From assembly GCA_002269645.1 (NCBI GenBank), contig NIVC01000527.1:248001-312000 (forward strand): a stretch of DNA of 64,000 nt. The letters run 5' to 3'. This document shows positions 4,030-58,715 of this stretch, in pieces. This DNA comes from Macrostomum lignano. Taxonomy: Eukaryota. Each line of letters opens with the position of its first letter. The first letter of the stretch is position 1. Under the pieces are notes generated by a model. The model did not search any database. It had not been told where the DNA came from and saw only the letters and a program-made list of their open reading frames with translations. The translations under genes were made by a program, and so were the position numbers.

Positions 4030-4112
4030 CTGAAATTTTACACGGGGTAACAGCGGATCTTAGCACTGCATACAGGGCAAAACTGCCCCGGTTAAAAACA
4101 GTTCAAACTCAC

Positions 4113-4170
4113 TTGTCGCGAAGAAGGCGGCCGTCAACGTTAGCGGCAAATAGCAGGGTTGAGGCAATGT
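4113..4170 (-). CDS. SLC12A4-7/KCC: KCC 58-nt exon
   Basis: (Y)[18 protein letters not shown](K); ccag| and |gtgagt; phase 1 in, phase 2 out. Confidence 0.9.
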
Positions 4171-4299
4171 CTGGCGTGGGGATTGTCGCGCAATTGCGTT
4201 GCTTTGATTCAAGGAAAATAGTTTCTCTTTAAAGTACCTACGAAAGAGAAAGAGCATAAACGTTCTTTAGAGTGCCTCTGCCTTTAGAGTGCTCTTCAA

Positions 4300-4983
4300 T
4301 ACAGAGTGACTCTCCATTCAGAGTGGCCCTCCATTTACAGTGACCCTCTGTTCAGAGTGGCCCTCCATTCAGAGTGACCCTCTGTTCAAAGTGACTCTCA
4401 ATCCAGAGTGACCCTCTGTTCAGAGTGACTCTCAATCCAGAGTGACCCTCTGTTCAGAGTGACCCTCCATTCAGAGTAACCCTCCGTTCAGAGTGACCCT
4501 TAATTCAGAGTGACCCTCCATTCAGTGTGACCCTCCATTCAGAGTGACGCTCCATTCAGAGTGACCCTTAATTCAGAGTGACCCTCCATTCAGTGTGACC
4601 CTCCATTCAGAGTGACGCTCCATTCAGAGTGACCCTCAATTCAGAGTGACCCTCAATTCAGAGTGACCCTTAATTCAGAGTGACCCTCCATTCAGAGTGA
4701 CCCTCCATTCAGAGTGACCCTCAATTCAGAGTGACCCTCCATTCAGAGTGACGCTCCATTCAGAGTGACCCTCAATTCAGAGTGACCCTCCGTTTAGAGT
4801 GACCCTCCGTTCAGAGTGACCCTTAATTCAGAGTGACCCTCCATTCAGAGTGACCCTCCATTCAGAGTGACCCTCCATTTTGAGTGACCCTCCATTTTGA
4901 GTGACCCTCCATGCAGAGTGACCGTCTTTTTAGAGTGACCCTCTTTTCAGAGTGACCCTCTATTCAGAGTGACCCTCCATTCA
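4300..4983. repeat. 17-bp minisatellite (intronic)
   Basis: Unit cagagtgaccctccatt. Confidence 0.95.
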
Positions 4984-5006
4984 GACCCAGGCTCCGCAAA
5001 GGATAC

Positions 5007-5676
5007 AGACAGCAGAGGTGACCAGCACGGCGCCGACGGTGCCCCGCGGAATGGAAATGTGCGGCTTAGCCAAGTCGCCGCTCCTGTTGGAGCCGGCCAT
5101 GATGCCCGTGACGCTAGGAAAGTAGATCCCGATCAGCATGATCAGCGAGGTGCTAATATCCGCCATCGACGGCTCCTCGCCTCGGGCCTTGTCGCCCAGC
5201 TCCGGCGGATTGGAGTCGTACAGGTAGCCAGCGTCGGTGTAATGCGACGGCCAGAAGTTCTTGACGAAGACGCCGCTGGCGATGCCGGGGATGCCGGGGA
5301 ACGCGGACGCCTCGTTGCGCATGAAATACTGGCAGGCTTCCGAGTCCGTCTGGTTTTGGCAGTAGAGCCGGTAGATCGGCCCGCTGGGGTCTTTAGTGCA
5401 CTGCATGGTGCCATTCTCCATCAGGTCTTTGGTGCGCAGCAGCCGGCTGCCCAGGGCGCACATCCTCGGGCTGCTGCTGTCGTTGGACACGAAGAAGCCG
5501 ATGGTCAGGCTGAGGATTGAGATGAGCACGCAGGCAAGCGAGATGGGCGCCACCTTGGACACGAAGCGAATGCCGATCATCACGCAGATGCCCATCAGTG
5601 CCAGCAGTATCAGGCCGTAGATTCTTGCGTTGTTGAAGAAGTCTTCAAAGAGGGCCGCTTGAGGCACAATGTACTT
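5007..5676 (-). CDS. SLC12A4-7/KCC: KCC exon (extracellular loop, TM6)
   Basis: KYIVPQAALFE...IYFPSVTGIMAGSNRSGDL...SIPRGT; ctgcag| and |gtatcc. Confidence 0.96.
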
Positions 5677-5804
5677 CTGCAGAAGCAGGGTTTAGCGATG
5701 TTGTTGTTGTCGGCGATATGTACATCAGTCACGTGATTTGTGCCTTTACTTAGCAACTACGCTCGTAAAAGGCTTTTTAATTAGCGATGGCCCTCTCCTA
5801 CATC

Positions 5805-6640
5805 TGTTTTCTACCCCTCTACTTCTCTACTTCTGCCTCTCTACTTCTCTGCCTTCCTGTCTGTCTCTCTACTTCTCTCCATTCCTGTCTGTCTCTCTAT
5901 TTCTCTCCCTTCCTGTCTGTCTCTCTACTTCTCTCCCTTCTTGTCTGCCTCTCTACTTCTCTGCCTTCCTGTCTGTCTCTCTACTTCTCTCCCTTCCTGT
6001 CTGTCTCTCTACTTCTCTGCCTTCCTGTCTGCCTCTCTACTTCTCTCCCTTCCTGTCTGTCTCTCTACTTCTCTCCATTCCTGTCTGTCTCTCTATTTCT
6101 CTCCCTTCCTGTCTGTCTCTCTACTTCTCTCCCTTCTTGTCTGCCTCTCTACTTCTCTGCCTTCCTGTCTGTCTCTCTACTTCTCTCCCTTCCTGTCTGT
6201 CTCTCTACTTCTCTGCCTTCCTGTCTGCCTCTCTACTTCTCTCCCTTCCTGTCTGCCTCTCTACTTCTCTGCCTTCCTGTCTGCCTCTCTACTTCTCTCC
6301 CTTCCTGTCTGCCTCTCTACTTCTCTGCCTTCCTGTCTGCCTCTCTACTTCTCCCTTCCTGTCTGTCTCTCTACTTCTCTCCCTTCCTGTCGGCCTCTCT
6401 ACTTCTCCCTTCCTGTCTGTCTCTCTACTTCTCTGCCTTCCTGTCGGCCTCTCTACTTCTCCCTTCCTGTCTGTCTCTCTACTTCTCTGCCTTCCTGTCG
6501 GCCTCTCTACTTCTCCCTTCCTGTCTGTCTCTCTACTTCTCTCCCTTCCTGTCGGCCTCTCTACTTCTCCCTTCCTGTCTGCCTCTCTACTTCTCCCTTC
6601 CTGTCTGTCTCTCTACTTCTCTGTCTCCCTCTCTCCCTCT
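5805..6640. repeat. 28-bp pyrimidine-rich minisatellite (intronic)
   Basis: Unit ctctctacttctctcccttcctgtctgt. Confidence 0.95.
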
Positions 6641-7063
6641 CTATTTCTCTTCCAGCCAGGATCTTTTATTGGGGGCGGGGTCCGTATTTTTGGAGTGGAC
6701 ACCACCAGTCTCTGGGGAAGCAGCACTACGGTTGCCACCTACTTTTGCCAGCCGATAACGGGCCTTTCTTTCCCTGCGTGACAGCGTAAAGTTGGCGGCT
6801 GGGAGGTTATCTTATCTTCTTCAACTTCTCTGACTCTACTTCTCCTACTCTACTTCTTCCACTCAACCTCTCACAATCTACTTCAACTCTACTTGAAGTC
6901 GATTCTTCTCCTACTCGATTTCTCGTAGTCTACTTCTCATTCACTACTCCTCTCGTTTCCTGTCTCCCTCTCTCCCTCCCTTCTGCCTCCCTGCTTCCCT
7001 GTCTACTTATCAGCCAGTCTCCCCGGTACTCCTCCCAGCAGCAAAGCAATTCCCCCAACTCAC

Positions 7064-7504
7064 GATGGCAATCTCGATCGCGCCCACAACGTACATAGCG
7101 GCAGCCACTGTGTTGGCCAAATAGAACAGAACGCCAACAGCGGAGCCGAACTCGGGGCCGAGCGAGCGCGATATCATGAAATAGGAGCCGCCGGCTGGAA
7201 CCCGGCCATTCGTGGCGATGGCGGACATGGAGATGGCAGTCAGCAGAGTGCAGGTGCAGCAGGCCAGCACGATCATGAGGGTCTGGAAGCCGCCAGCGAC
7301 GCCGACAATCCAGCCGAGTCTGATGAACAGCAGCACGCCGAAGATGTTCTGAATGCAGGGAAAGAACACGCCCAGGATGGTGCCGAGGTTCGCGGCCTTC
7401 TGCTCCTCGCCGTGCGCCTCTCCACTAGTCGGGTTGATGCCGGCGCGGTACTGGATGAGCTGGGTGAGCACCGAGGCCACCCGAGGCCTGCCGGTGTACT
7501 CTTC
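7064..7504 (-). CDS. SLC12A4-7/KCC: KCC exon (TM1-3)
   Basis: [13 protein letters not shown]...[29 protein letters not shown]...[14 protein letters not shown]; ctgcag| and |gtgagt. Confidence 0.96.
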
Positions 7505-7517
7505 CTGCAGAGTGGAC

Positions 7518-7800
7518 GTGTCTGTCTCAGTATGTGTCTTAGTGTGTCTCAGTATGTGTCTTAGTGTGTCTCAGTGTGTTTTTGTGTCTCTCAGTATGTG
7601 TCTTAGTGTGTCTCAGTATGTGTCTTAGTGTGTCTCAGTTTGTGTCTTAGTGTGTCTCAGTTTGTGTCTTAGTGTGTCAGTATGTGTCTTAGTGTGCCTC
7701 TCAGATGTGTCAGTGTCTCTCAGTTTGTGTCTTAGTGTGTCTCGGTATGTCTTAGTTTATTTTATTGTGTCTTCGTGTATCTCCGCATGCATCTTAGTGT
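7518..7800. repeat. 22-bp TG-rich minisatellite (intronic)
   Basis: Unit gtgtcttagtgtgtctcagtat. Confidence 0.9.
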
Positions 7801-32696: not shown

Positions 32697-33134
32697 ATGC
32701 CGAGCTCGCCGCACACCCAGACAGTGCAGCTGCAGTTGGAGAAAGTGCCCGAGCGGGACAGCCACGGCCAGCGGGTCATGGTGAAGGACCCGGCCGGCGG
32801 CCTGGCGCCCAAGCTGCTCACTGGATTCCGCTTCGCTGGCGGCATCGACCAGGACCGGCAGTACTGCCCCTACGGCTACCCAGACTGTGGCATCTATGTC
32901 ACCCACGTGTACAGCGGCAGTCCGGCGGACAAGGCCGGCCTGCGGGTGCACGACAAGATCCTGCAGGTGAATGGCAACAATCTGGCCTTCTTGGGCCACG
33001 CCCAGGTTGCTGCGCTACTCAACCGGGAGACCCAGCTGAGCCTGTTGGTGCACCGCGGCTTCCAGAGATTCACCACGCAGTTGAGCGACTCGCTGGGTTC
33101 GGAGGCCAGGGTCTCCGCCTCGGTGCTGCTTTGA
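32697..33134 (+). CDS. TAX1BP3: single-PDZ protein, TAX1BP3/TIP-1-like, intronless CDS
   Basis: GFRFAGGIDQD...GIYVTHVYSGSPADKAGLRVHDKILQVNG parallels TIP-1 GFSIGGGIDQD...GIYVTRV...GLQIGDKIMQVNG. AG acceptor ttgcag|cc just before ATG 32697. Confidence 0.88.
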   Translation: MPSSPHTQTVQLQLEKVPERDSHGQRVMVKDPAGGLAPKLLTGFRFAGGIDQDRQYCPYGYPDCGIYVTHVYSGSPADKAGLRVHDKILQVNGNNLAFLGHAQVAALLNRETQLSLLVHRGFQRFTTQLSDSLGSEARVSASVLL

Positions 33135-34221: not shown

Positions 34222-34564
34222 GAAAAGCATTAAGGTGGTAATTGGTTATGTACCCATCATATTTGATAATTAAAAGAAAAGAGCAGTGTCAAACGCTCTG
34301 AAATTTGTTTTATTGAATTTGTTGAGTTCAAATGCCATGAATGAGTCATGAAAATGCATTTTTTGTATTATTACTCAGATAGCAGTAAACAGAACAGGAA
34401 ACAAACAACCAACGTGCAAAATTCTGTGATGAGTCACTTGACTCTAAACTTCTAAAATAGCTCGTAGGAGCGAAGTGCGCAATCCCGATCTCTAGTTATT
34501 TCGGAAATGGAATTCTTGATTTTACCGAGATCGCCAATTTTTTATTTCAATGGAGATGGGTACC

Positions 34565-35060
34565 ATTTGATTTCTAGGAAAAGACAACGCTTTGATTGCT
34601 AGGAAATGGCTAGTCTTTGATTTCTAAGAAATGACTGCCCTTTGATTTCTAGGAAATGACTGCCCTTTGATTTCTAGGAAATGTCTACCCCTTGATTTCT
34701 AGGAAATGTCTACCCCTTGATTTCTAGGAAATTTCTACCCCTTGATTTCTAGGAAATGACTACCCTTTGATTTCTAGGAAATGTCTACCCCTTGATTTCT
34801 AGGAAATGACTACCCCTTGATTTCTAGGAAATTTCTACCCCTTGATTTCTAGGAAATGACTACCCTTTGATTTCTAGGAAATGTCTACCCCTTGATTTCT
34901 AGGAAATGACTCCCTTGATTTCTAGGAAATGACTTGCCCTTTGATTTCTAGGAAATGACTGCCCTTTGATTCTTGGAAATCACTACCCTTTGATTCTTGG
35001 AAATCACTACCCTTTGATTCTTGGAAATCACTACCCTTTGATTCTTGGAAATTACTACCC
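34565..35060. repeat. 25-bp minisatellite directly after the RECQL stop codon
   Basis: Unit ttgatttctaggaaatgactacccc. Confidence 0.94.
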
Positions 35061-35064: not shown

Positions 35065-35493
35065 TTATTTTCGGTAAAAAGGTTTCCCACGATCTGGCGA
35101 AGACGAATAGACAAAATCATCATCATCATGATCAGGATCGCGCTGATCATCGTTGTCATCAGCATCAGCCGTCAGATCAATAGACTCGATAGCTGCCTGT
35201 CTTTGTCGGCGCTTCTTCGCTGCGGGCTGCCCGTTGGATGCCTCACTGGATGCAGCGCCGTCGCCGTCCCTGGCCGGCAGCGGACAGATCAGGTCGCCCC
35301 GGCCGAGCCGCCGAGCCCCCCAGGCTAGGTAGGGCACCGTGGCGAACGGAGTAAAATGAAAGTCCTCGGTCAGGTAGCCGCGAAGCAGCAGTTCGGCCAG
35401 GCCGGCCTCCACTGCCTGGCGGAGCGGCGCGCCGGGCGGCAGGGCGGAGCGGGTGCGGGCGCCCAGACGGCCGGAGGACAGCGAATCGGCAAC
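35065..35493 (-). CDS. RECQL: RECQL last exon (winged helix, acidic tail)
   Basis: AELLLRGYLTEDFHFTPFATVPYL resembles RECQ1 YLKEDYSFTAYATISYL; gccag| acceptor; TAA at 35065-35067. Confidence 0.9.
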   Translation of the reverse strand, partial: VADSLSSGRLGARTRSALPPGAPLRQAVEAGLAELLLRGYLTEDFHFTPFATVPYLAWGARRLGRGDLICPLPARDGDGAASSEASNGQPAAKKRRQRQAAIESIDLTADADDNDDQRDPDHDDDDFVYSSSPDRGKPFYRK

Positions 35494-35973: not shown

Positions 35974-36408
35974 CTTCATCGCAGTCAGCCGTTTATTGCC
36001 CCCAGCCTCGGCCAGCAGGTCGGCCATCAGCTGGGCCAGCTGGGCCAGATCCCACGGCTGGGCGGGCGGTGCCGGGCCGCGGCACCAGTCGCACATGGCC
36101 TGACAGGCGACTGGCTCAACAACCGGCTGCATCGATTCGCTTGACGGCGCCTCCGCCTCAGCCTCCAGGTGCCTGGCCAGCAGGCGCCGACGGCAGTCCC
36201 TGGCCGTGCAGTAGCGCAGCATCTCGTACAGCTTAGCCAGGCCGGTCCGCTCGGCGAACACGATCGGACTGAGGCGGAACACGTCCGCCAGCCGATAGAA
36301 CAGCAGGCACTGGGCTGGCTGACCGTCCCGGCCGGCCCGCCCAGACTCCTGATAGTAGGTTTCCGGGCTCTTGCTCAGCGTGTGGTGAATCACAAACCGA
36401 ACGTCTGG
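35974..36408 (-). CDS. RECQL: RECQL exon (helicase motif VI, Zn-binding RQC)
   Basis: [29 protein letters not shown]...CRR...CQAMCDWC; aacag| and |gttggt. Confidence 0.95.
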
Positions 36409-36519
36409 CTGTTCCAACGGGTGGGGGCGGAAGATGGAAGGGTTGCTTGACTGGCTGACGCAATATGATTGAAAGGCTCTGGGATTTCACAGGCATACAT
36501 TTAAGATCTAGACGGTAGA

Positions 36520-36746
36520 CAGAAAGACAACCGGACACTAAGGCAGACAGACAGACAGACAGAAAGCCAGACAGACAGACAGACAGACAGACAGACAGCC
36601 AGAAAGACAGACAGACAGATAGTCAGATAAACAGACAGACAGACTGACAGAAAGACAACCGGACACTAAGGCGGACAGACAGACAGGCAGTCAGACAGAC
36701 AGAGACAGGCAGACAGACAGACAGACAGACACTAAGACAGACAGAA

Positions 36747-36781
<35 letters not shown>

Positions 36782-36798
36782 AAGACAGACAGACAGTC

Positions 36799-36847
<49 letters not shown>

Positions 36848-36962
36848 GCCAGAAAGACAGACAGACAGACAGACAGGCAGACAGACAGAGACAGGGAGAC
36901 AGACAGACAGAGAGACAGACAGACAGACAGACAGGCAGGCAGGCAGACAGACAGAGACAGGG

Positions 36963-37011
<49 letters not shown>
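36520..37011. repeat. (CAGA)n microsatellite (intronic)
   Basis: Degenerate caga run. Confidence 0.95.
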
Positions 37012-37015
<4 letters not shown>

Positions 37016-37018
37016 TAC

Positions 37019-37255
37019 CTTATCGATGCCCATCCCAAAAGCCACGGTGGCCACCACCACGCGAACCCGGCCAGCCACCCAGTCGGTGTGGGCGGCTGCG
37101 CGCAGCCGGGAGTCCAGGCTGGCGTGGTAGCAGGCGGCGGGCAGGCGGGCGCGCTGCCGCAGGTGGTCGGTGAGCTGCTCGGCCTCGCGCTGTGTGCAGC
37201 AGTACACAATGCCCGACTGGCCTGCGAACTCGCCGCGAATCAGTTCGGCAACTGC
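37019..37255 (-). CDS. RECQL: RECQL exon (helicase motifs IV-V)
   Basis: GQSGIVYCCTQREAEQL...YHASL...VVVATVAFGMGIDK; ctgcag| and |gtaaga. Confidence 0.95.
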
Positions 37256-37277
37256 CTGCAGCGGCGTGCGGGGACTG

Positions 37278-38358
37278 GCTGGATTAGCTACTGAGATGGC
37301 TGGATTAACTAATAAAATGGCCAGATTAGCTACTGAGACGGACGGATTAGCTATTTAGATGACCAGATTAGCTACTGAGACGGCCGGATTAGCTATTTAG
37401 ATGACCGGATTAGCTACTAAGACGGCCGGATTAGCTATTTAGATGACCGGATTAGCTACTGAGACGGCCGGATTAGCTATTTAGATGACCGGATTAGCTA
37501 CTGAGATGGCCGGATTAGCTACTAAGACGGCCGGATTAGCTATTTAGATGACCGGATTAGCTACTGAGACGGCCGGATTAGCTACTGAGATGGCTGGTTA
37601 GCTATTTAGATGACCGGATTAGCTACTAAGACGGCCGGATTAGCTATTTAGATGGCCAGATTAGCTACTGAGACGGACGGATTAGCTACTGAGATGGCTG
37701 GTTAGCTATTTAGATGACCGGATTAGCTACTGAGACGGCCGGATTAGCTATTTAGATGACCGGATTAGCTACTGAGATGGCCGGATTAGCTACTAAGACG
37801 GCCGGATTAGCTATTTAGATGACCGGATTAGCTACTGAGACGGCCGGATTAGCTACTGAGATGGCTGGTTAGCTATTTAGATGACCGGATTAGCTACTGA
37901 GACGGCCGGATTAGCTACTGAGACGGGCGGATTAGCTACTGAGATGGCTGGTTAGCTATTTAGATGACCGGATTAGCTACTGAGACGGCCGGATTAGCTA
38001 CTGAGATGGCCGGATTAGCTACTGAGATGGCTGGTTAGCTATTTAGATGACCGGATTAGCTACTGAGATGGCCGGATTAGCTACTGAGATGGCCGGATCA
38101 GCTATTTAGATGACCGGATTAGCTACTGAGACGGCCGGATTAGCTACTGAGATGGCCGGATTAGCTACTGCGATGGCCGGATTAGCTACTGAGATGACCG
38201 GATTAGCTACTGAGACGGCCAGATTAGCTACTGAGATGACCGGATTAGCTACTGAGACGGCCAGATTAGCTACTGAGATGACCGGATTAGCTACTGAGAT
38301 GACCGGATTAGCTACTGAGATGACCGGATTAGCTACTGAGATGACCGGATTAGCTACT
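37278..38358. repeat. 21-bp minisatellite (intronic)
   Basis: Unit ggattagctactgagatggcc. Confidence 0.96.
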
Positions 38359-38401
38359 GGGGTGCCCGCATTAGCCACTGGGATAAAAGGCAAATACCCA
38401 C

Positions 38402-38794
38402 CTGCATAGAGTCAGCAGGCTTGGGCAGCACTCTGTAGAGCAGGTTGGGACGGTCGAAGCCGCCCCTGAGCAGCAGGCAGTCGCTGCTCAAGCCGAGCAT
38501 GTCGCGGACATCGGCCAGCACCCTGTCAGAGGCGGTGGCGGTCAAGCCGATGGTCGGCACGCCGGGAAACTGGCGCCTCAGCACGCCGAGAAATTTGTAA
38601 TCCGGCCGGAAGTCGTGACCCCACTGGCTGCAGCAGTGCACCTCGTCCATAGCCACTCGGGACAGCTGGCCGGCCGAGTGCAGCTTCTCAAGGCCGGCCA
38701 TCAGGCGGCGGCTTTTGGCCAGCCGCTCTGGGGTGGCGTACAGAAGCTTCAACCGGCCGGCAGCCGCCTCATCCAGGGCGCGCTTCGTGTCTGA
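38402..38794 (-). CDS. RECQL: RECQL exon (DEVH box)
   Basis: LLYATPERL...DEVHCCSQWGHDFRPDY...LTATA...FDRPNL; ccttag| in phase 0 and |gtgggt. Confidence 0.95.
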
Positions 38795-38861
38795 CTAAGG
38801 AGATGGAATGGGGGAACAGGTGGGTACGCTGAGATGGGAGATGGGAACAGGGATCAAAGGG

Positions 38862-39745
38862 GATAATCAGATGGGATCAGGGATCACAGGATATAGTCAG
38901 ATGGGATCAGGAATCACAGGGGATCATCAGATGGGATCAGGGATCACAGGATATAGTCAGATGGGATCAGGGATCACAGGATATAGTCAGATGGGATCTG
39001 GAATCACAGGGGATCATCAGATGGGATCAGGGATCACAGGGGATCATCAGATGGGATCAGGAATCACAGGGGATCATCAGATGGGATCAGGAATCACAGG
39101 GGATCATCAGATGGGATCAGGAATCACAGGGGATCATCAGATGGGATCAGGGATCACAGGGGATCATCAGATGGGATCAGGGATCACAGGGGATCATCAG
39201 ATGGGATCTGGAATCACAGGGGATCATCAGATGGGATCAGGGATCACAGGGGATCATCAGATGGGATCTGGAATCACAGGGGATCATCAGATGGGATCAG
39301 GGATCACAGGGGATCATCAGTTGGGATCTGGAATAACAGGGAACAATCAGATGGGATCTGGAATCACAAGGGATAATCAGGTGGGATCAGGGATCACAGG
39401 GGACAAATCAGATGGGATCAGGGATCACAGGGGATCATCAGATGGGATCAGGGATCGCAGGTAATAATCAGATGGGATCTGGGATCAACAGGGGATAATC
39501 AGATGGGATCTGGGATCACAGGGGATAATCAGATGGGATCTGGGATCACAGGGGACAAATCAGATGGGATCAGGGATCACAGGGGATCATCAGATGGGAT
39601 CAGGGATCGCAGGTAATAATCAGATGGGATCTGGGATCAACAGGGGATAATCAGATTGGATCTGGGATCACAGGGGATAATCAGATGGGATCTGGGATCA
39701 ACAGGGGATAATCAGATGGGATCTGGGATCACAGGGGATCATCAT
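38862..39745. repeat. 30-bp minisatellite (intronic)
   Basis: Unit cagatgggatcagggatcacaggggatcat. Confidence 0.96.
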
Positions 39746-39751
39746 TCTGAC

Positions 39752-40267
39752 CTGAGCGCAGCCAGCGCTGAGCTGTACAGCAGGCACGCCGATCCGGTCC
39801 AGCGCCATGACCTGGTCCTCCATCAGCGACACCAGCGGGGACACGCACAGAGTCAGCCCCCTGCTGAGCAGAGCCGGCAGCTGATAGCAGAGACTCTTGC
39901 CAGCTCCCGTGGGCATCACCAGCAGGCAGTCCCGGCCGGACATGGTGGCGTTGACCGCCCGCAGCTGCAGTGGCCGGAACTCGGACAGGCCGAACTGGTC
40001 GCGCAGCAGCTGGCCGGCCTCGGCCGACCAGGCGAAGACGTCGGCGCTGTCGAACTCGTCCGGCCGAGGCGCCGGCGCCGCGTTGGCGCCAGCGGCTGCT
40101 TCGGCCCTGTCGCGGCGTCGCAGAATAGCGGCTCGCCTGTCGCTAATGCGAGCTTTCAATTCCTTCAGTCGGCGAATGTCGGCGCTGAGACGGGCGAGCT
40201 CGGCGTCCAGCTGCTCGAGCTCGGTTGCCTCGTCCGGGACGGCCTGATGCGGCTGCGGCTGCTGGGC
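39752..40267 (-). CDS. RECQL: RECQL first visible coding exon (N-terminal coiled coil, Q motif, Walker A); no ATG
   Basis: AQQPQPHQ...[12 protein letters not shown]...[10 protein letters not shown]...[16 protein letters not shown]; ctattccag| acceptor and |gtcaga. Confidence 0.9.
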
Positions 40268-40304
40268 CTGGAATAGCAGCGGGAATTCCGGGAGGCGGTT
40301 TACA

Positions 40305-40530
40305 AGCTCGAAACTTCACAAGCTCGAGGCTTCATGAATCCAAAACTTCACAAGCTCGAGGCTTCATGAATCCAAAACTTCACGAGCTCGAGGCTTCATG
40401 AACTCAATACTTCACGAGCTTGAGGCTTCATGAAATCAAAACTTCACAAGCTCGATGCTTCATGAACTCAAAACTTCACGAGCTCGAGGCTTCATGAACT
40501 CAAAACTTCACAAGCTCGAGACTTCACAAA
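40305..40530. repeat. 32-bp minisatellite
   Basis: Unit aaacttcacaagctcgaggcttcatgaactca. Confidence 0.9.
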
Positions 40531-40861
40531 CTAAAGTCGTCTATTACCCTTCTAGCAGTCACGTGACTTAACTAATACTTAGTCCATATTTTATTCTAAG
40601 CATTTGCTTCAAATAAAAATATTGTACAAGAAAACGAAAATTATTAACTAGCTCAAATTTCTATTGTCAATCAGTGAATTTATTGAGTGATAAAAGCCAG
40701 AGCCACGACTGGCTGCTAGCAGAGCGAATGAAAACAGTGAACTGTCAATTGGTGCGTTTCATTCTACTACAACTATCTTAGCATTGTGACCACAGGGATT
40801 TTCAATCCTTGACAATTTATTACTATCAAATGAAACTAACAAGTATATCTGGGAGAGAATG

Positions 40862-41425
40862 ACCGCCCACAGATGGACTGGGGAGGGGTGACAGCCCACA
40901 GATGGACTAGGGGAGGGGTGACTGCCCTCAGATGGACTAGGGGAGGGGTGACAGCCCACAGATGGACTGGGGAGGGGTGACAGCCCACAGGGGAGGGGTG
41001 ACAGCCCACAGATGGACTGGGGGAGGGGTGACTGCCCTCAGATGGACTAGGGGAGGGGTGACTGCCCTCAGATGGACTGGGGAGGGGTGACAGCCCACAG
41101 GGGAGGGGTGACAGCCCACAGATGGACTGGGGGAGGGGTGACTGCCCTCAGATGGACTGGGGGAGGGGTGACTGCCCTCAGATGGACTGGGGGAGGGGTG
41201 ACAGCCCACAGATGGACTGGGGAGGGGTGACAGCCCACAGATGGACTGGGGAGGGGTGACTGCCCTCAGATGGACTGGGGAGGGGTGACAGCCCACAGGG
41301 GAGGGGTGACAGCCCACAGATGGACTGGGGGAGGGGTGACTGCCCTCAGATGGACTGGGGGAGGGGTGACTGCCCTCAGATGGACTGGGGGAGGGGTGAC
41401 AGCCCACAGATAGACTAGGGGAGGA
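40862..41425. repeat. about 30-bp G-rich minisatellite
   Basis: Unit ggaggggtgacagcccacagatggactggg. Confidence 0.94.
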
Positions 41426-41974
41426 CAGCACAAGGATGAAATCGACTCTTGCTGAAAATTATGCACGAAAATACTGGAGTTCGAGTTAACAGGGCAGTAA
41501 AAAACGTGAGTAGTAGAACATGCATCTGAGCAGAATTTTCATATAAAATTAGTCGCAAATACATTACATGTATGCAATTACAAAACCATGGTTTTACAGT
41601 GCAATCAACAAAGCGCAATAAATCTTTAAAAAACGCATGCAAATCTAATCACCGTAACTAGGCAAGAGCAGTTACAATAATTATATACTACTCAGTAAAT
41701 ACTCGAGTAGCACTCGGAATACACTTATCAATCATTGCATCATCAAATCAATAATTTATAACTTAAGTTTGGCCGCCAAAATGGAAGCCTTGATATAAAT
41801 TTCAATTGCCATCAAACAGAAGATGCATATACACTACTAAGACTCGTATATACTACTTTTCTAATTGACTGGGATAAAAATTATTCAGAGGCACATTGTT
41901 CAGTTCAGTTTACATATATCTGGCATTCTTAGCATTAGCCTAGTAGCTCTTAACATTATTAGCTAAGGTCATTT

Positions 41975-42450
41975 ATAGATAGTTTAAGGTCACTAGTTGA
42001 GGTCATAGCCAAAGGTCACTAGTGGAGGTCATATAGATAGTCTAAGGCCATTAGCTCAGGTCATATAGATATTCTAAGGCCATTAGCTCAGGTCATATAG
42101 ATAGTCTAAGGCCATTAGCTCAGGTCATATAGATAGCCTAGGGTCATTAGCTCAGGTCACATAGATAGTCTAAGGTCACTAGCTCAGGTCATATAGATAA
42201 GTCTAAGGTCACTAGCTCAGGTCATATAGATAGCCTAAGGTCACTAGCTCAGGTCATATAGATAGTCTAAGGTCACTAGCTCAGGTCATATAGATAAGTC
42301 TAAGGTCACTAGCTCAGGTCATATAGATAGCCTAATGTCATTAGCTCAGGTCATATAGATCGCCTAAGGTCACTAGCTCAGGTCATGTAGATAGCCTAAG
42401 GTCACTAGCTCAGGTCACATAGATAGTCTAAGGCCATTAGCTCAGGTCAT
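41975..42450. repeat. 32-bp minisatellite
   Basis: Unit ggtcactagctcaggtcatatagatagtctaa. Confidence 0.93.
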
Positions 42451-42582
42451 GCATTGTCTTCAAAGCCCCTTCATTGCTGCTCATGCCAGGAAACTCAAAC
42501 ACAAGAACTCAAATGTAATCACATATTAGAGTAGGTAGGCACAACATATCGGCACCATAAAAAACAGCCAGTTGCCCCAACT

Positions 42583-42887
42583 CTATCCAGACGCGGCAGC
42601 AGCAGCGGCAGCCGCCTTCAAAGCTTTGTTAGCCCGTTTCAATTCGGCCAAATCTGCCGCCAACTTGTCGGCGTTCTCCTCCATCCGGCGTCGACGCTCC
42701 ACAAGGATGTGATCTTCCAGGTCGATGGTCTCCTTCTGCAGAGTCGATTTGTCCTCTTCACAGCGCAGAACGGCGTCGCAGTGCTGGTGTAGGCCGGCTA
42801 GCAGTTTGTACAGCCGCTTGCCAGTGGGATCGGAAGCTCCAGAGAATACGGCCTCGTCCGCCACGCGATAGGTGCGGTCCAGTTTGC
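42583..42887 (-). CDS. CCDC22: CCDC22 exon 3 (last)
   Basis: GKLDRTYRVADEAVF...KRLYKLLAGLHQHC matches CCDC22 GKLDRTFAVTDELVF...KAYKYLAALHENC; aaacag| in phase 1. Confidence 0.92.
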
Positions 42888-42911
42888 CTGTTTGATTGGG
42901 AATTGAATTTT

Positions 42912-43500
42912 TTATCCCCTGATAGTGTAGCGATTTTTATCCCCTGTGTGACTGTAGCGATTTTTGTCCCCTGTGACTGTACGGATTTTAATCCACTGTG
43001 ACTGTAGGGGTTTTATTCCCCAAGTGACTGTAGGGACTTTTATCCCGATGTGACTGTAAGGATTTTTATTCCGTGACTGTAGGGATTTTTATACTCAGTG
43101 ACTGAAGGGATTTTATTATTTTTTATCCCCAGTGACTGTAGGGATTTTCATTCCCTGTGACTATAGGGATTTTCATCCCCTGTGACTATAGGGATTTTCA
43201 TCCCCTGTGACTATAGGGATTTTCATCCCTGTGACTATAGGGATTTTCATCCCCTGTGACTATAGGGATTTTCATCCCCTGTGACTGTAGGGATTTTCAT
43301 CCCCTGTGACTGTAGGGATCTTCATCCCCTGTGACTGTAGGGATTTTCATCCCGTGACTGTAGGGATTTTCATCCAGTGACTGTAGGGATTTTTATCCTC
43401 TGAGACCGTAGGGATTTTCAACCCTGGGATTCTGGGGATTCACCATTGTTATCCCTTGTTAATGCTTCGATTTTTATCCAATGTGACTGCAGGGATTTAT
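42912..43500. repeat. 25-bp minisatellite (intronic)
   Basis: Unit gtgactgtagggattttcatcccct. Confidence 0.92.
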
Positions 43501-43689
43501 ATCCCCTGGAATTCTTGGGATTTACCAATTCTAGCCCACCGGAATCCTGGGATTTTTTAATTTTTTGGATGATAAGGATAATTGTCCCTTAGAGAATATT
43601 AGGACTTTCTAATAGAATAGGCAACTTTTTTATCCCATATTCCCCGAAAGAATCAAATTCGACAACCTCCCCCCATCTCCAGCACCAAC

Positions 43690-44080
43690 CAGTGAGCCGG
43701 TTAATCTCCTTCTGCGCCGCCCGCAGTTCGTCGCTAATCCGGCCCAGCTCGGCTCGCTGCTTCTTCAAATTGGCGGCAAAATCAAGCAGGCCGCGGGTCA
43801 GCTCCCGCCTGCGCGTCAGGCTCGGGTCGCCCTCGGCCAGGCGGCGGGCCAGCCGGTCGGCCGCCCGCTGCAGCAGCTCCCGTTCGGCCTCGCGGGCGCG
43901 CAGATCCTCCCGGCAGGCGGCCAAGTCGGCGCGGGATTCGCGCAGCTCGTCGAGGCGGCCGGCCAGCACGGAGCTGCGCGCGTCCAGCTCGGCTTGGAGG
44001 GCGCGGCGCTCCGCCTCCATGGCGGCCCGGCGCTCCGCCCACTGCTCGGACTGGCGGGCCAGCTTGGCCTCTTGAGCAGC
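43690..44080 (-). CDS. CCDC22: CCDC22 exon 2 (coiled coil)
   Basis: AAQEAKLARQSEQW...RRELTRGLLDFAANLKKQRAELGRISDELRAAQKEINRLT; ctccag| and |gttggt. Confidence 0.9.
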
Positions 44081-44576
44081 CTGGAGCAGCGGCAGGGTTG
44101 GCACACAGAATAAACAAGCTTAAGGAGAATTTCGAATTCGGGATCTGTGCAAAGGAATATCGCATTCGCATTGAAGCGAGTTGTCAGGGGCAATCCCCAG
44201 GAATTCTCTTAGACCGCCTTAAAATCCTCAGATGACTTGCTGTAAATAGTTTTCCGGCGAAATTCCTTTTCCATAATTCCCCCCTGACATAGGATTCGTT
44301 TTGGTATACCCCTTGTGATACCCTTTGACATTCATCTTTATGATTCCGACTCAAAGTTTTCCCTGACATGTGCTTTACTCTAGGATCTATCCGTAGGAAT
44401 TCCCCCTGACACGTGCTTCACTCTAGGATCTATTCGTAGGAATTCCCCTCAGGATTCCCCCTGACATGTGCCTCTGCATGAATCTTCCACTGAAGTACCT
44501 GCTGAAGTTAGCCTCGCTAAAATCCCCCCGAAATTTCCCATAGGTCATAGGGAAGAAGAGGCAAGTGGCAAATCAC

Positions 44577-45776
44577 CTGAGCCTCCTCCAGCCTGTCCGC
44601 CTCCCCAGCGGCCAGCAGCTCTGCCGCTTTCAGCCGGGTCTGAGCCTCCTGCCGCTCCCGCTGCTCCCACGCGTCGGCGGCGGCCTGCGCCTCGGCAGTT
44701 TGAGCGTCCAACTTGGCGGCCCGGCGCTCCGCTTTGCCCGTCGCCTTGGCAACCGCTTCAAGCTCGGTGCGCAGCCGTTCAAGATCTTCCCGAGCCCGAG
44801 CTGCTCGCGCTTCGGCAGACTCGGTGGCCTCCGTCTCCGCAGATTTGAGCAGCTGCTGGTGCTCGTCGTTTGCGGACTTTTTCCGCGTCGGCTTCGGCGG
44901 CTTTGGCGGCGGCGGAGGTCGACGCCCGCCGGCAGCCTGTTTGACGGCGTCGGCAACAGCCTGGCGAAGCGAGCGCGGCAGCAACTCGACGTCGATGCCG
45001 ACACCACCGGACTCCGTGTCGGCTGTCGATGGTCTGGTGCCAATGGCGGCCTCCTCCTCGCGCCGCTCGGCCAGCAGCAGCGAAGCCGTCCATGACAGCA
45101 GCGAGGGGCCCGGCGCTGCCGAGGCCGCCCAAAAGCCCGGCCGGCCGGCCGGACCGCAGAAAAACGGCAGGCCGCGCTGGAACTGCCGCACAGATGGCGG
45201 AATTTCAGAGCCGGCCGCGGCCGGAGCGGCCCGGTTTGGCACGCACGGATAGACGGTGCGGAACTCGCAGGGGCCGCCGCCACCGCCCTCAAAGCACAGG
45301 CCGCCCTGGCGGAGGGCGAAGCCGTCCGGCCTGCAGCAGGCGGGCAGCCAAGGCGCGGCCAGCTGGGCCCGGCACCTGGCCGCGATCAGCCGGTCCAGCA
45401 GCTGCTGCCCAGACGCCCCAGTCAGGGCGTCCTTCAATTCCCCAGCCTCGTCCTTCGGCAGGCGCTCAACTAGGAACACCAGCAGCGAGCGGGCGTCTCG
45501 TTCGCTGGGGTACAGCAGGCTCTGATAGCCCAGCTCGCCTCTGTAGCCCAGGCCTCGGACAGCCTCGGCCAGCTGCTGTCCGATCCGGTAGCGGATGTTC
45601 ATGCCGTCAGGCAGGGTGATGGAGAATGACTCGTCTGGTTGCATGAGTCGCAGGCAGCGGCCCACAGCTTCCACCATCATCTCGGCAGTGAGCTGGCCAA
45701 TTGAGGTCACCTTCGGGTCCCAGTCGCAGCCAATGGAGACCAACTGGCGAATAACGTTTCTGTCCACTTCCTCCAT
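44577..45776 (-). CDS. CCDC22: CCDC22 exon 1
   Basis: MEEVDRNVIRQL...TAEMMVEAVGRCL...LGYRGELGYQSLLYPSE...LVFLVERLP matches the CCDC22 N-terminus; donor |gtgatt in phase 0. Confidence 0.95.
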
Positions 45777-46062
45777 TGGGTGGGATGCTAACTGACTGTA
45801 ATGGGGGATTGTTTCGATAAAAATTAATGTGTTTCAATAATACAACCAATTAAGCCTTGATAATTAGTGCTAGTTGCATTCAAATTAAGTATCTAGAAGA
45901 CACCAAATTTAATGTGTTCCTAGTCATCATTGTTTAAGTTTGGATTTTAAGTGTAAAAAAATATGAAAAATTCCATTGCATCCTCATCAACCTAATCTTG
46001 ATCCTTATCTTCATATATGCACAACCCCGCCCCCGCCAATTTACACTGGCCGTGCAACTTAT

Positions 46063-47753: not shown

Positions 47754-48530
47754 CGAGGGTGTTGCAAAAGTTTCCGGACTAGTGTTCGCTAAAGCACAAT
47801 TCTTATCAGATTTGGATGAGGTTTCATCCATAAACTATTTGGTTATTAATAAGTGCCAGGCTAAAATGTTGCATGACTAGGACAAACACAGCCTACATTA
47901 GAGCCAAGTTAAGCCTGAGGGTCTATGTTATTTCACACGATTTCACTCGAAGAATGAGCCGACCAAAAAACAACTCAGATTTTGGTTCGAAAGAAAGTCA
48001 ACGTCACTTCATTATGGCATGTCAGCGCATGGGTAAGACACCAACGCAGACTTTTAACAAAGTTTGCACTGCTTTCGGTGATCATGCGTTGGGTCGCACA
48101 CAAGTGTTTGCCCACCACCGACTTGCTGCTGAAGATCAAACAAGCGTCGCTGATGCTGCTCGCTCTGGCCGTCCGCGTTCCAGCACAGATGACAACAATG
48201 CGGCTGCCGTGCTCCAATATTTGGAGGCAAACCCATCTGCATGTGTGCGTGAAGTGGAGAGTGTGTGCGGCGTTCACTACTCGTCTGTGAGTCGCATTCT
48301 CCAACGCCACGGCTGGTCGAAGATCTGTGCTAAGCTAAGTGGGTGCCACGCGAGCTGACAGAAGAACACAAAAAAGCACGGGTGCGATGTTCGGCAGACA
48401 ACTGGGCTGTATGGAACGAGCTTGGTGATGAGAAGTTCAAGGAGCTTGTAATCACAATGGACGAGACGCCGCTGCCAATGTTTAATCCACTGACAAAGCA
48501 GCAGTCGATGCAGTGGGGGCCAAAGGGGTT
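47754..48530 (+). mobile_element. 3'-truncated mariner transposon with a frameshifted transposase
   Basis: TA|CGAGGG TIR start; ATG 47954; HTH region with RSGRP; (W)VPREL after a frameshift near 48335; ITMDET (first catalytic D). No right TIR seen. Confidence 0.88.
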
Positions 48531-52685: not shown

Positions 52686-53492
52686 GTAAGGGCAGATAAT
52701 TTTACGCGATGGCTCTTTTTTTATACTTTTCTTAATTGAGTCTCAGCTCTCAACAGTTTTCCTTCTCATCCATCCAAGCAAGGCGTTCATTCTAACCTGT
52801 TAGATAGTGCTTCGTCCAGCCTATTTGACAGTGTCCGTGATTCTCTTGCTAGCGAATTGAAGCTTCGTAACTTCGTAACAAAGATCAGATCCAATCCATC
52901 CATCAAAACTTTTCTATAGAGCCAAGAGATTTTTTATTCTCACGCTGTATAAGACAAGAGAGCAGAGCAGAAATTTCAACTCTAGAATATCCTTCTAAGT
53001 AGAATGGCATTCATTCGCCGGGGCTGTTGCCCCCAGGACCCCGGGTCCTGCACGCAATGGCGTGGTGAACTATCTGTGCAGTATGAGACTGGTATGGCCC
53101 TTATCCCAACCAGCGATGCTCACACCTGCCTCCCCTGGCGGGCTGATAGCTAAAGAGACTCTGTCTCCTGATTTTCACCTTGCAAGGCGCACTTCGAAGG
53201 GTACTCGTCCCGTGGGTGTTAAGGCAGGCTCTCGGGCCTTGCCGAGCTAATTCGTTGGCGCCGGGTCCTGGTGTGACCATATAAACGCACCCTCTAATGT
53301 CCCAGTGTAACTCCGTGCTGATGGACGCTTGGCCAGGGAGTAGTCTGGTCGCTAACGGTTCCCCTTGCGCTTTTGGGTCCCCCGCAGGGTGGTATTTCGC
53401 TTTTTGGGGGCCTGCCGCTTGGTTTGGGGTTGCGGCCTTGCGGCTCTTTGCCTGTGTTCTGCAGGAAGTCCCACCTTTTTTAATTCCAGCCA

Positions 53493-55013
53493 ATGGCTTC
53501 TAACCGAAGTACCCAACCGGCTGTGGATGACACAGTGCCTCCGGCCTCGGCTGGGGCCGTGGACTCCGCGGCCATACCACCTGCTACCATCGGGGACGCC
53601 TCGGCGAGACCCGTGGAGCCAACTCTGAGCGGTGCCTCCGAGAAGACACCTGCTACTCCAGCTGCCAAGCAGCTGAGCACCACCTCTGGAGCTGCCCGCC
53701 GTCGACTTAACAAGGCGAGGCGGGCCAAGGAGGGCGGAAGCCTAACCGGCGCCAGGGGCCAACGGCCCGCGGCAGCGGAAGCTTCCCAATCTGGGGCGGT
53801 GGCGGAAGAGGGCCTCGAGCCCACTGAAGCCCCTGTCCAGGATGGGGAGGCCGATGCAGCCGGGAGGGTGGACAGCCCACCTGAAAAATGCTCCACCGAC
53901 CCCCGGGCCTCCTACGCTGATGCGGCAAAGAGGCAACCGGCGGTTGTCATTCTGGGGAAGGACGCGCGCCTGTCTCCCGATCAGCTGAAGCAGGTGAGAG
54001 GTGCCGTTGATGGCCTCCTGTGGAAGCAAACTCTGAAGGGCACGCCTCTGAACATTCATTCGAATGCGACGAGGGACTCGTGCCTTCTCATTTGGCCCAG
54101 TGATGCTGACTCGGGTCGGCGGCTCCTTGAGCTGCTGCCCGAGCAGAGCTGGGACCTCAACCTAGCCTTCTGCAGAGAGGACCAGCGCCCCCGGACCAAG
54201 AGGCATCGAATCTGGGTTCCGGCCAGGAGCGTTGTTACCTCTGCTGACGAGCTCCGGAAAGGACTGCTAGCAGTCAACCGGGAGCTTCCCGCCGCGGGCC
54301 TAGTGGTGCATGACACCCTTAAGCGCACCGACGGCACTGGCTTCACAGCCATCCTGGGGCTGTCGGACGCCTGGATGAGGCGCTATCCGCACGGCAGCTT
54401 CATCAACGTCGGCCTTTGGAAGCTGCGCATCCGCTCCTACGAGGCCGACCCTCCCCGTGGTGGTGAGCAGGGCGGGCGGAATGCCGAAGCAGCCGGGGCC
54501 GTGGCGCGAGCTTCTGCTCAGGCTGCCAAAGCAAACCGCCCCGCCCGGCAGCACGGCCGCGCGGGTAAAGCCGAGCGCGCTGCTGAGGGCGGAGGAGACC
54601 GACGCCCGGCACGCAGCACCAAGCGACGCGGCCTGTACCAGCGTGCAGCTGAGGCAGTCCGTACCGCCAAAATCACCCAGCTGAGGAGAGAGGTCGCCGG
54701 GACGCCTAGGCGCACCAGTTCGTCCAGGGAGGGTGGGGATGTCCCAGCTGGGCCCAACCCCTCGGGGCAGGGCCGCCTGGAGACGGACCCGCCTGCCCAG
54801 GCGGCTGGCTGCTCCAGGGCATTGGGCCAGTCTGAAGCGGAGGACCCCATGGCTGGTGGGCGAAGGGCGGCGAACGCTGCCTATTGCCTTCCGACCAACC
54901 GGGGGCCTTTTGCTGAAGAAGAGCCCATGGACACCGGTGACCCCGACCCGAAGCTGGTGAGCGCCGAGGAGGAGGAGGAACTCCTGGCGACTGCAACACC
55001 CGATCTGCACTGA
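53493..55013 (+). CDS. retrotransposon ORF1 (gag-like, DUF4780-like core)
   Basis: 506-aa ORF; RPRTKRHRIWVP...GLLAVNRELP recalls the DUF4780 domain of LOA-type ORF1s (from memory). Stop overlaps the ORF2 ATG (TGATG). Confidence 0.8.
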   Translation: MASNRSTQPAVDDTVPPASAGAVDSAAIPPATIGDASARPVEPTLSGASEKTPATPAAKQLSTTSGAARRRLNKARRAKEGGSLTGARGQRPAAAEASQSGAVAEEGLEPTEAPVQDGEADAAGRVDSPPEKCSTDPRASYADAAKRQPAVVILGKDARLSPDQLKQVRGAVDGLLWKQTLKGTPLNIHSNATRDSCLLIWPSDADSGRRLLELLPEQSWDLNLAFCREDQRPRTKRHRIWVPARSVVTSADELRKGLLAVNRELPAAGLVVHDTLKRTDGTGFTAILGLSDAWMRRYPHGSFINVGLWKLRIRSYEADPPRGGEQGGRNAEAAGAVARASAQAAKANRPARQHGRAGKAERAAEGGGDRRPARSTKRRGLYQRAAEAVRTAKITQLRREVAGTPRRTSSSREGGDVPAGPNPSGQGRLETDPPAQAAGCSRALGQSEAEDPMAGGRRAANAAYCLPTNRGPFAEEEPMDTGDPDPKLVSAEEEEELLATATPDLH

Positions 55014-58000
55014 TGCCAGCGGCTACCTGGTGTCTGCAGATCAACACCCAGCACTGCGTGGCGGCGTCAGTCAACCTGATGCGCACGACAGAGCAACAGC
55101 TTCCGGGCCTGGTCTTCGTACAGGAGCCCTGGATGACTAAAGGTAAGCCAAATAATGTGCCATCTGACTACCACTGTTTTTGCATGGCGGACTCTCAATA
55201 TCGCCCAAGATCTCTGGTCTTTGCTGCAAAAGCTTTTGAAGCATGGATGAGACCTGATCTCTCGACTGGGGACATCTGTGTTGTTCAAATCAATAACCTC
55301 ATTCCAAATAAACCTGCGCTGGTAGCATCTGCCTATTTCTTAGGCGATGCCCCAGTAGTCTGCGACGCACTAGTCAACCTCATTGACTATGCCGCGTCCC
55401 GACGGTTCGAGCTGCTCATTGCAGGGGATGTGAACGCACACCACCTGCATTGGGGCAGCAAGAACACCAATAACAGAGGCGAGGAGCTGCTGGCCTACGT
55501 CAGCAGCACAAACCTCAATTTCTGTAACGTGGGCAATGCACCAACGTTCAATAATGGGCGGTGGGCCGAAGTCATCGACACCACCATCGCCTCACCCGGA
55601 CTGCTTTCCGCAGTCACGGGCTGGCGAGTGTGGGACGAGGACTCGCTCTCGGACCACCGCTTTATCCGCTTTTGCATTGGGCCGACCAAGCAAAAGCCTA
55701 AAGTCACTTGGAGTCGGAACGTCAGGAACACCGATTGGGCCGCCTTTGGCTCGAAGCTGAGCCGCGGCCTTCGGGATCTTGACCCCCCCCCAGTGACCTC
55801 TCTGACTGCCAGGTGATGGATGATCTCGCCTCCTCCCTGGGCGGGGCGATCACCACTGCCTTTGAAGCAGCCTGCCCCCTAAAGGCCTATAAAGGCAAGA
55901 AATCTGCTCCCTGGTGGAACCCAGAGCTCGGGGCCCTTCGGCGCCGAGCCAGGACCCTCCAAAGGCGAGCACCAAAACCAAAGACCCATCTGATATAGAG
56001 GCCTACACCCGTGCGATCCACGAGTTTAAGGGCCAAGTCAGAAGGGCCAAGACGGCCAAGTGGCGCCAATATTGCGAAGGGCTTGAGGGCTCTCGCCCCG
56101 TAGCCCGCGTGGTTAAGGCACTCACTAATGACCGTTTTTCTAAACTCTCTGTTGTGAAGAGACCTGATGGCTCGGTCACAGAGAGTTCGGAAGAGACTCT
56201 AGAGCTCATGCTCAACAGTTTTTTCCCTAAATCTCCGACTCAGCAGGGCCCGCCCGACCACACAGTGGGAGGGCAAGGCCTAGCAAAGTCTATGATCACC
56301 AAAGACCGCATTATTAGAGCGGCAAGGTCCTTTAACCCGTTCAAGGCGCCTGGGCCCGACGGCATCTACCCAGCGTTCTTGCACGAGGCGGTAAAAAACC
56401 ACCGCTTCCTGGATCTGCTCTGTCGTCTCCTTCGAGCTTGTGTGGAGCTGGGCTATGTACCAGTTGCGTGGAGAGAGGCCCGGGTGGTCTTTATCCCCAA
56501 GCCTGGAAAGAGCGACTACCAATCGGTGAAGGCCTTCAGGCCTATCAGCCTCACCTCTTTCTGCCTCAAGCTCCTCGAGAGGTTGGTGCTTTGGCGCCTA
56601 CTTTCGGTCGAGCTGAAGCGCTTCCCACTCTCGCAGAACCAGCACGCCTTCCGCGCGGGCAGGTCAACCGAGAGTGCTCTCCATGTCATTGTTGACTTCC
56701 TGGAGAGGGCCGTTCTTGGCAGCGGCTTTGCCCTCTCGCTTTTCCTGGACATTGAGGGGGCCTTCGACAACGTCATCTTCGAGGCCTTTTGCAGAGCCCT
56801 GGAATCCAGGGCCACGCACCCTCACCTTGTCCGGTGGATCATGTTCATGATCCGGAACCGCACTGTTGTGGCCCACCTGAACGGCAGCTCTCTTTCGGTG
56901 CCTGTCCTGAAAGGGGGCCCCCAGGGCGGCGTTCTCACCCCCGTTCTCTGGAACATGGTCATGGATGAGTTGCTTTGCAGTGATCTCCACGACCCCATTC
57001 TCAAGGTGGGCTATGCCGATGATGTGACCGCGATATGCGCGGGCCCCTCGGTTGATACCATCAGAGACCTTCTGCAGGGCTTTCTGGGACGAGCGGAGCG
57101 TTGGGCAAACCAATGTGGCCTTAGACTCTCAGAGTCGAAAACCACAGCAGTCATGTTTACCAACAAACTGGTCTGGACCATTAAGCCCCTCACCCTCTAT
57201 GGAAAGAATATTTCCATGGAGAAGCAGGTCCGCTGCCTGGGCCTCACTCTGGACCACAGGCTTAACTGGACTCCGCACATTCAAACTAAAGCCAAAAAAG
57301 CCCTGGCTGTCCTGGCTCAGATCAGGCGCGCCGTGGGCACCACCTGGGGGCTCACCCCCAGGAAGCTGTGGTGGATTTACACTGCCATCATCCGCCCCTC
57401 GATCAGTTACGCCAGCCTCGTGTGGGCTAGCGGCCTGAGCGTCAAGAGCAACCTCGACGCTCTCTACAAAATCCAGGGCAGAGCCTGCCGCATGACTATG
57501 GGCGCTCCACCCTCTACTCCTTTTGAAGGCATGAATGCCTTCCTCTGTGCCCCTCCTTTGGATATATATATCAAAGGAGAGGCGGCGAAGAGCACCCGGC
57601 GTCTTCTGGATGCTGGGGTGGCCTTCAAGAAAGTGCGGGCCTTTAAGAAGCGGTCGCTTATCCCGCACTCTGACCTCTGCCTCAAGGCTCTCGAGGAGTG
57701 TGGCGGGCTCAACATCCTCACGGACTCGATCCCAGCCACCCTTCTCCTGAGCCAAAGGTATAAGGTCACCATTCAGCCTCGACACGAGGCGAGTGACAGC
57801 TGGAGCGATTCTGAAGTCCACTGTTACACTGACGGCTCTATGAGGCATGGTCGTTCAGGCTTCGGAGCTTGCGTCTTCTTTAAGGGAGAAGTGGTGTGGA
57901 GCTACTCCCAACACACTGGGCTCAACTCCAGTGTTTTTCAGAGCGAGGTGCTTGCCATCAGCTCCTGCGCGGCAGAGCTGCGCCGAAGGCAGCTTGGCGG

Positions 58001-58715
58001 CCGGAAATTTATTTTTCACTCTGACAGCCAAGCTGCCCTTCGGGCCCTCTGCCGCAGCACCGCCAGCTCCAGGTCCGTCCTGGACTGCAACACCCAGCTC
58101 AACGGGCTTGCGCTAGGCAACCAAGTGGAGCTCAGATGGATCCCGGGCCACGCCGGCTTCCTCGGCAACGAACGCGCTGACCTGCTGGCCAAGGCTGGCT
58201 CCGTCGGCGCGCTGCTGGGGCCGGGCCCGGGAGCCCCCATCCCCGCCTCGGTGATCAATTCCCGCGTTAAGCGCTGGGCTGACTCCGAGCATCTCCGCAG
58301 GTGGCACGACACCCGGAATTGTAGGCAATCCCGTGCTGCCGTCCCCTGCCCCTCTCCTCTCCTGCGTAGAGCCCTCCTCAGGCTCAACTGCAGAGACCTC
58401 AGAGCAGTTAGCATGGCCCTCTCCGGGCATGGCTGCTTCTCTCGTCACCGTTTCCTTCAGGGCCAAGTACCCGAGGAGCGGTGCCCCTTCTGCCGCTCAG
58501 GCAGTGAAAACGCCGAGCATTTTATCTGCCACTGCCCGGTTTTCACCAGGGCCAGGCTTACTCACCTCGGGCCAAACCCGGTTCTCTCCGACGTTTGCAG
58601 GCCCGAGAGCATCCCGCTGCTCGCCCGGTACCTCAGGGACACCGGACGAGCTGATTTCTTCCCCACCGTCGGTGAGGAGGACCGCGCTGCAGGCGAGACC
58701 GACGGGTCCCCCTGA
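55013..58715 (+). CDS. retrotransposon ORF2 (APE endonuclease, RT, RNase H, C-terminal CCHC), with two 1-nt frameshifts
   Basis: VQEPW, GDVNAHH, SDH (APE); KAPGPDG, LDIEGAFD, GPQGGVL, YADD (RT); YTDGS, SDSQ, WIPGH (RNase H); CPFC...H...C. Frameshifts near 55790 and 55972. Confidence 0.93.

Follow-up and report, generated by a model that had tools for sequence, protein, structure and literature searches.

The AUG at the 3' end of the flatworm spliced leader (SL) has been an established translation initiator since Cheng et al. 2006, as that work is reported by the papers citing it (PMC9851317, PMC12582326, PMC5832876, PMC3510090); the same citing papers bear out the first-pass annotation of the DNA analysed here, which had called this use established. 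For S. mansoni, Cheng et al. are quoted as finding the SL AUG in frame in 28% of trans-spliced transcripts, with more than 40 cDNAs needing it (PMC9851317). A 3'-terminal AUG is conserved in all reported parasitic flatworm leaders (PMC12582326). Some Echinococcus cDNAs regain their conserved N-termini only through the SL AUG, a role that is conserved throughout Neodermata (PMC3510090). For the Macrostomum leader, too, the final ATG has been described as a start codon for translation, one that makes annotation harder (PMC10468722).

M. lignano has a single spliced leader, CGGTCTCTTACTGCGAAGACTCAATTTATTGCATG, and the first-pass statement that flatworm leaders end in AUG holds for it: the leader closes with ...TTGCATG and is followed in the SL RNA gene by a GTAAG donor (PMC8629364). 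On clipped reads, its 3' end is expected as ...TTATTGCATG or ...CAATTTATTGCATG. Trans-splicing affects about 30% of M. lignano genes, whose acceptors are enriched in the motif [T/C]TNCAG (PMC8629364). For the sequence of the leader, and for the role of its AUG in flatworms at large, we rely on the literature. The stretch of M. lignano DNA that we analysed, referred to as the window, is 64 kb long; the SL sequence is absent from it, with up to three mismatches allowed, and Rfam returned zero RNA families across its whole length.

The window contains a RECQ1 (RECQL) gene on the minus strand. Our model has five exons, all joined in phase 0, and encodes 669 codons plus the stop codon. Exon 1 (39752..40267) is 516 nt or 172 codons long, reads AQQPQ...GCAQ, starts and ends in phase 0 and lacks a start codon; it encodes the N-terminal coiled-coil, the Q motif and Walker A, and is followed 3' of 39752 by the donor gtcagaat. 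Exon 2 (38402..38794), exon 3 (37019..37255), exon 4 (35974..36408) and exon 5, which includes the stop codon (35065..35493), reproduce GenBank entry PAA81491.1 residue for residue. The four donors used by the gene (gtcaga, gtgggt, gtaaga and gttggt) are loose.

The annotated product matches Pfam families PF00270, PF00271 and PF16124 (DEAD, Helicase_C and RecQ zinc-binding). In a search of solved structures, the best match was human RECQ1 (2V1X/4U7D; E of about 1e-144, query residues 60-589), with BLM at 1e-98. The helicase is closest to RECQ1, not to BLM, WRN, RECQ4 or RECQ5, and has what defines the RECQ1 subfamily. In an alignment of 15 sequences, the RECQ1 proteins of fish, reptiles and invertebrates place their Met 5-15 residues ahead of a common coiled-coil segment, ELxxVxxEL, and the N-terminal ELxxLDxEL segment of the M. 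lignano protein aligns with these orthologues. This alignment agrees with the earlier observation that the conserved N-terminal coiled-coil begins directly after the acceptor. Measured against these orthologues, the RECQ1 ORF lacks essentially just its initiator codon.

A gene without a start might be a 5'-truncated pseudogene or an artefact of assembly. The species is a hidden polyploid in which many genes are duplicated (PMC10468722), and tandem repeats fill every intron of the locus, both of which would suit such an origin. Against it, none of the five exons is disrupted, all are in phase 0, and together they give 669 codons with every helicase motif; a second copy, A0A1I8H5J3 of an earlier assembly (99% identical), shares this N-terminus. 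This origin is therefore scarcely credible.

The introns were noted in their own right. They consist almost entirely of minisatellite arrays, with short splice-site stretches at the flanks (window 36409-39751): 30 copies of a 30-mer make up 95% of intron 1 (38839-39744), 53 copies of a 21-mer make up 97% of intron 2 (37276-38384) and (CAGA)n makes up 77% of intron 3 (36544-37012). Five nucleotides past the RECQL stop codon, an array of 20 copies of a 25-mer begins (34561-35060).

At its 5' end, RECQ1 exon 1 is directly preceded by the acceptor ctgctattccag/GCC (the slash marks the junction). Read 5' to 3' on the minus strand, the surroundings are ...gtaaaccgcctcccggaattcccgctgctattccag/GCC CAG CAG CCG CAG..., which confirms at 40268/40267 that the exon starts straight after a good acceptor with GCC CAG CAG. 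The pyrimidine-rich tract and 3' splice acceptor, ctcccggaattcccgctgctattccag, span 40268..40294, with the AG at 40269-40268; this is the putative SL trans-splice acceptor. Upstream, an in-frame TGA (40316..40318) closes the frame. The 16 sense codons (48 nt) between this stop and the GCC at 40267 contain no ATG. The first-pass annotation was thus right about a TGA without an intervening ATG, and its distance of about 55 nt is corrected to 48 nt, or to 51 nt if the stop itself is counted. The TGA lies within a 32-mer tandem repeat of 6.9 copies (40307..40526), directly upstream of the acceptor and in the presumed outron.

Exon 1 itself holds no ATG in any of its three frames before 39943. The first one (39941..39943) is exon codon 109, immediately before Walker A and downstream of the Q motif FRPLQL, which occupies exon residues 97-102 (39979-39962); the claim that the first in-frame ATG follows the Q motif is accordingly correct. 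Going by these frames, no genomic AUG appears able to give the conserved RECQ1 N-terminus.

Translation could in principle begin at ATG 39943, yielding a RECQ1 devoid of the coiled-coil and the Q motif and turning the 324 nt upstream into 5' UTR. Among the AUGs of the exon it comes first, and automatic gene prediction that insists on an ATG would pick it. The sequence in front of it, however, has full coding periodicity. The GC content at the three codon positions of codons 1-108 is 0.80/0.51/0.83, alongside 0.66-0.75, 0.47-0.52 and 0.82-0.84 in exons 2-4 and the rest of exon 1, whereas the 198 nt upstream of the acceptor are flat (0.48/0.39/0.52). Codons 1-108 also match conserved RECQ1 residues, motif 0/Q among them: the alignment places the invariant residues W80, F92, R98, Q101 and L102 here, and the segment aligns to structured residues of human RECQ1 (2V1X/4U7D). 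Codons 1-108 are coding, not 5' UTR. On a trans-spliced mRNA, moreover, the SL AUG would lie upstream of ATG 39943 and in frame with it. We consider a start at ATG 39943 very improbable.

A further way to dispense with an AUG would be a transcript that is not trans-spliced and starts at a near-cognate codon. The only such codon in frame between the TGA and the acceptor is a CTG (40277..40279), located in the presumed outron. Being in frame and downstream of the TGA, the CUG at 40279-40277 could open the protein as M-L-F-Q-AQQ.... Its context is poor, with C at -3 and C at +4, and it lies inside the polypyrimidine tract of a good acceptor. The CTG is missing from both protein entries, even though the open frame would have let 5'-partial ORF calling extend as far as this codon. 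A CUG start is thus highly unlikely.

Another source of a start codon in the genome would be a small upstream ATG exon, in phase 0, that is cis-spliced to the same acceptor and was missed by the annotations. The first-pass annotation had seen no phase-0 ATG mini-exon in 40300-42580. This holds for species-typical donors, as none ends at GT[AG]AG, but not for GT donors at large: between 40268 and 42582, 16 open frames begin with ATG and run in phase 0 to a GT of some kind, two of them, at 42558 and 41589, being a bare ATG/GT. Because the real donors of this gene are themselves loose, sequence alone would allow such an exon. The candidates are fewer than chance would give (16, against 44 expected), none of the 16 has a GT[AG]AG donor (0.97 expected from shuffles), six are copies within the 32-mer tandem repeat and one sits 25 nt past the CCDC22 stop codon. 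Both database entries stop at the acceptor and neither gene model has an upstream cis exon. A hidden ATG exon is therefore improbable.

The database models themselves are informative. PAA81491.1, 'hypothetical protein BOX15_Mlig020302g1, partial', has 668 amino acids and starts with QQPQPH, without a Met. It is encoded on contig NIVC01000527.1 of GCA_002269645.1 (Mlig_3_7), its CDS corresponding to window positions 40264-35065, and the window is identical to this contig across the 25.2-kb locus that was compared. Our five-exon model matches it residue for residue except for the first Ala; the GenBank CDS starts 3 nt inside exon 1 and not at its first base. UniProt entry A0A1I8H5J3, from an earlier assembly of M. 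lignano and 99% identical, starts with AQQPQPH, that is, at the first exon codon (40267), and the two proteins share one 90% cluster. Both protein entries that reach this end thus begin 0-3 nt from the acceptor and have no Met.

For the Mlig_3_7 annotation, TBONE was used to cut transcriptional units at peaks of mapped SL-trimmed reads, and ORFs were then called by TransDecoder (PMC5730564). As the frame is open upstream to 40315 and the 5'-partial ORF yet starts at 40264, the 5' end of the transcript model must lie at 40266-40264, at the acceptor. A model reaching further upstream would have had its ORF extended, or reset to ATG 39943. The neighbouring CCDC22 gene provides an internal control: its exon starts at 45795, after the acceptor ttacag/T, and its CDS is annotated from the next base, 45794, with the gene's own ATG (45776) 18 nt further on, so this model was cut at its acceptor like that of RECQL. 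An offset of one nucleotide at the boundary would account for both models. In the M. lignano transcriptome papers and their supplements we did not find the RECQL gene (Mlig020302, 'helicase Q1'); one large table has RECQL5 only, among the rows listed. A scan of metagenome contigs for the SL-exon junction gave zero hits, which was to be expected and does not bear on the question.

We propose that the spliced leader of 35 nt is joined in trans to the RECQ1 pre-mRNA at the acceptor 40268/40267. As this leader ends in AUG, the mature mRNA would read ...UUAUUGCAUG/GCC CAG CAG..., and the leader AUG would serve as the initiator of a 670-residue RECQ1 starting with MAQQPQPHQ. The genome would then supply all of RECQ1 but its first codon, and the outron upstream of the acceptor, with its in-frame TGA and 32-mer tandem repeat, would be discarded. 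The RECQ1 acceptor TTCCAG fits the M. lignano trans-splice motif [T/C]TNCAG. Joining the leader to exon 1 gives ...TTGCATG/GCCCAG..., in which AUG-GCC-CAG is in frame and translates to MAQQPQPHQ..., continuous with the 669-codon ORF, just as had been predicted (MAQQ...). The Kozak context of the leader AUG is mixed, with U at -3 and G at +4. As no ATG occurs in any frame before 39943, a scanning ribosome would meet the SL AUG first, the next AUG being 324 nt further on.

The anatomy of the 5' end, the fit of leader and exon in one frame, the coding nature of codons 1-108 and the boundaries of the database models are direct observations; from them we infer trans-splicing at 40268/40267 and a translation start at the leader AUG. 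We conclude that RECQ1 of M. lignano very probably uses the trans-spliced leader AUG as its initiator, with a probability that we put at roughly 85%.

CCDC22 (42583..45795, minus strand) lies upstream of RECQL on the same strand and, like it, starts at an acceptor, ttacag/T. The relation of the SL AUG to the ORF differs between the two neighbours: it would be in frame in RECQL and out of frame in CCDC22, where the resulting ORF of 63 codons would run across the gene's own ATG, 19 nt downstream (45776-45797). The CCDC22 stop codon and the RECQL acceptor are 2315 nt apart, or about 1037 nt once 1278 nt of tandem repeat are subtracted. In M. lignano, the operon threshold is a repeat-adjusted intergenic distance below 1 kb (PMC8629364), and the spacer between CCDC22 and RECQL falls right at this threshold.

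An AT-rich, non-repeat segment of the spacer (40590..40821, minus strand) holds its only three AATAAA motifs, starting at 40821, 40684 and 40595, and is likely the 3' end of the CCDC22 mRNA, judging from these signals. From this cluster to the RECQL acceptor there are 300-550 nt, 220 nt of which are 32-mer repeat. The minisatellites of the spacer, at 40860-41424 and 41958-42450 (units of 30/110/140 nt and of 32/97 nt), take up more than 40% (about 46%) of it; such arrays fit the published remark that repeats inflate the intergenic distances of M. lignano operons. That RECQL is also the downstream member of a CCDC22-RECQL transcription unit can be put forward tentatively, the odds being somewhat against it. 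It is more doubtful still that RECQL lacks a promoter as well as a start codon of its own and would, as a downstream cistron, depend wholly on the SL to free its mRNA and to supply the initiator. Were this so, the 32-mer repeat at the acceptor would fall in a short inter-cistronic spacer.

Other features of the window are as follows. A non-LTR retrotransposon occupies 53484-58712 on the plus strand, with an APE-type endonuclease ORF (54941-55813) and a 940-codon ORF for reverse transcriptase and RNase H (55893-58712); its leading ORF of 509 codons (53484-55010) has zero Pfam matches. Exons of an SLC12-type cation-chloride cotransporter, with AA_permease and SLC12 domains, lie at 1-7570 on the minus strand, and the gene leaves the window at its low-coordinate end. 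A weak match to the helix-turn-helix (HTH) of Mos1/mariner transposase (47834-48355, plus strand) stays below the Pfam cut-off (E = 4e-4) and is probably what is left of a decayed transposon. Finally, a small single-exon gene with a PDZ domain (32697-33134, plus strand, 145 amino acids in GenBank) is located on the strand opposite to RECQL, about 1.9 kb beyond its stop codon.

If RECQ1 does start at the leader AUG, its status in the databases, 'partial' in GenBank and without Met in UniProt, is explained, the protein being complete with this codon in place. Many other trans-spliced, 5'-partial gene models of M. lignano probably need the same correction. A conserved DNA-repair helicase of a free-living, early-branching flatworm would then join the mRNAs requiring an SL AUG, and the case fits the view that use of the leader AUG is old within Platyhelminthes.

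Compared with the neodermatan mRNAs that depend on the SL AUG, the M. lignano case is alike in its leader with a terminal AUG, in an acceptor placed at the first sense codon and in an SL AUG that would be in frame; the 5' end is likewise devoid of a nearby genomic AUG, and the N-terminus of the orthologues is recovered only via the SL AUG. It differs from these parasite cases in that M. lignano is a free-living, early-branching macrostomorph and the recipient gene is RECQ1. The evidence also differs in kind, that for RECQ1 being genome anatomy and annotation boundaries, that for the neodermatan genes cDNA and transfection experiments. With the described SL and operons of M. lignano (Wudarski et al. 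2017, PMC5730564; Ustyantsev & Berezikov 2021, PMC8629364), the locus shares the acceptor motif and, on the proposed reading, the leader; as in those operons, a repeat-rich spacer separates two genes of one strand, CCDC22 and RECQL, each of which begins at an acceptor. Genes that depend on the SL AUG are not discussed in these two papers. RECQ1 further resembles the slORFs found by slORFfinder (PMC9851317), in which the start codon comes from the leader. The slORFs, however, are new or alternative ORFs, also using near-cognate codons, in nematodes, trypanosomes and Oikopleura, whereas in RECQ1 the leader AUG would start a canonical, conserved ORF. Read in this way, RECQ1 is a fresh instance of an already known mechanism.
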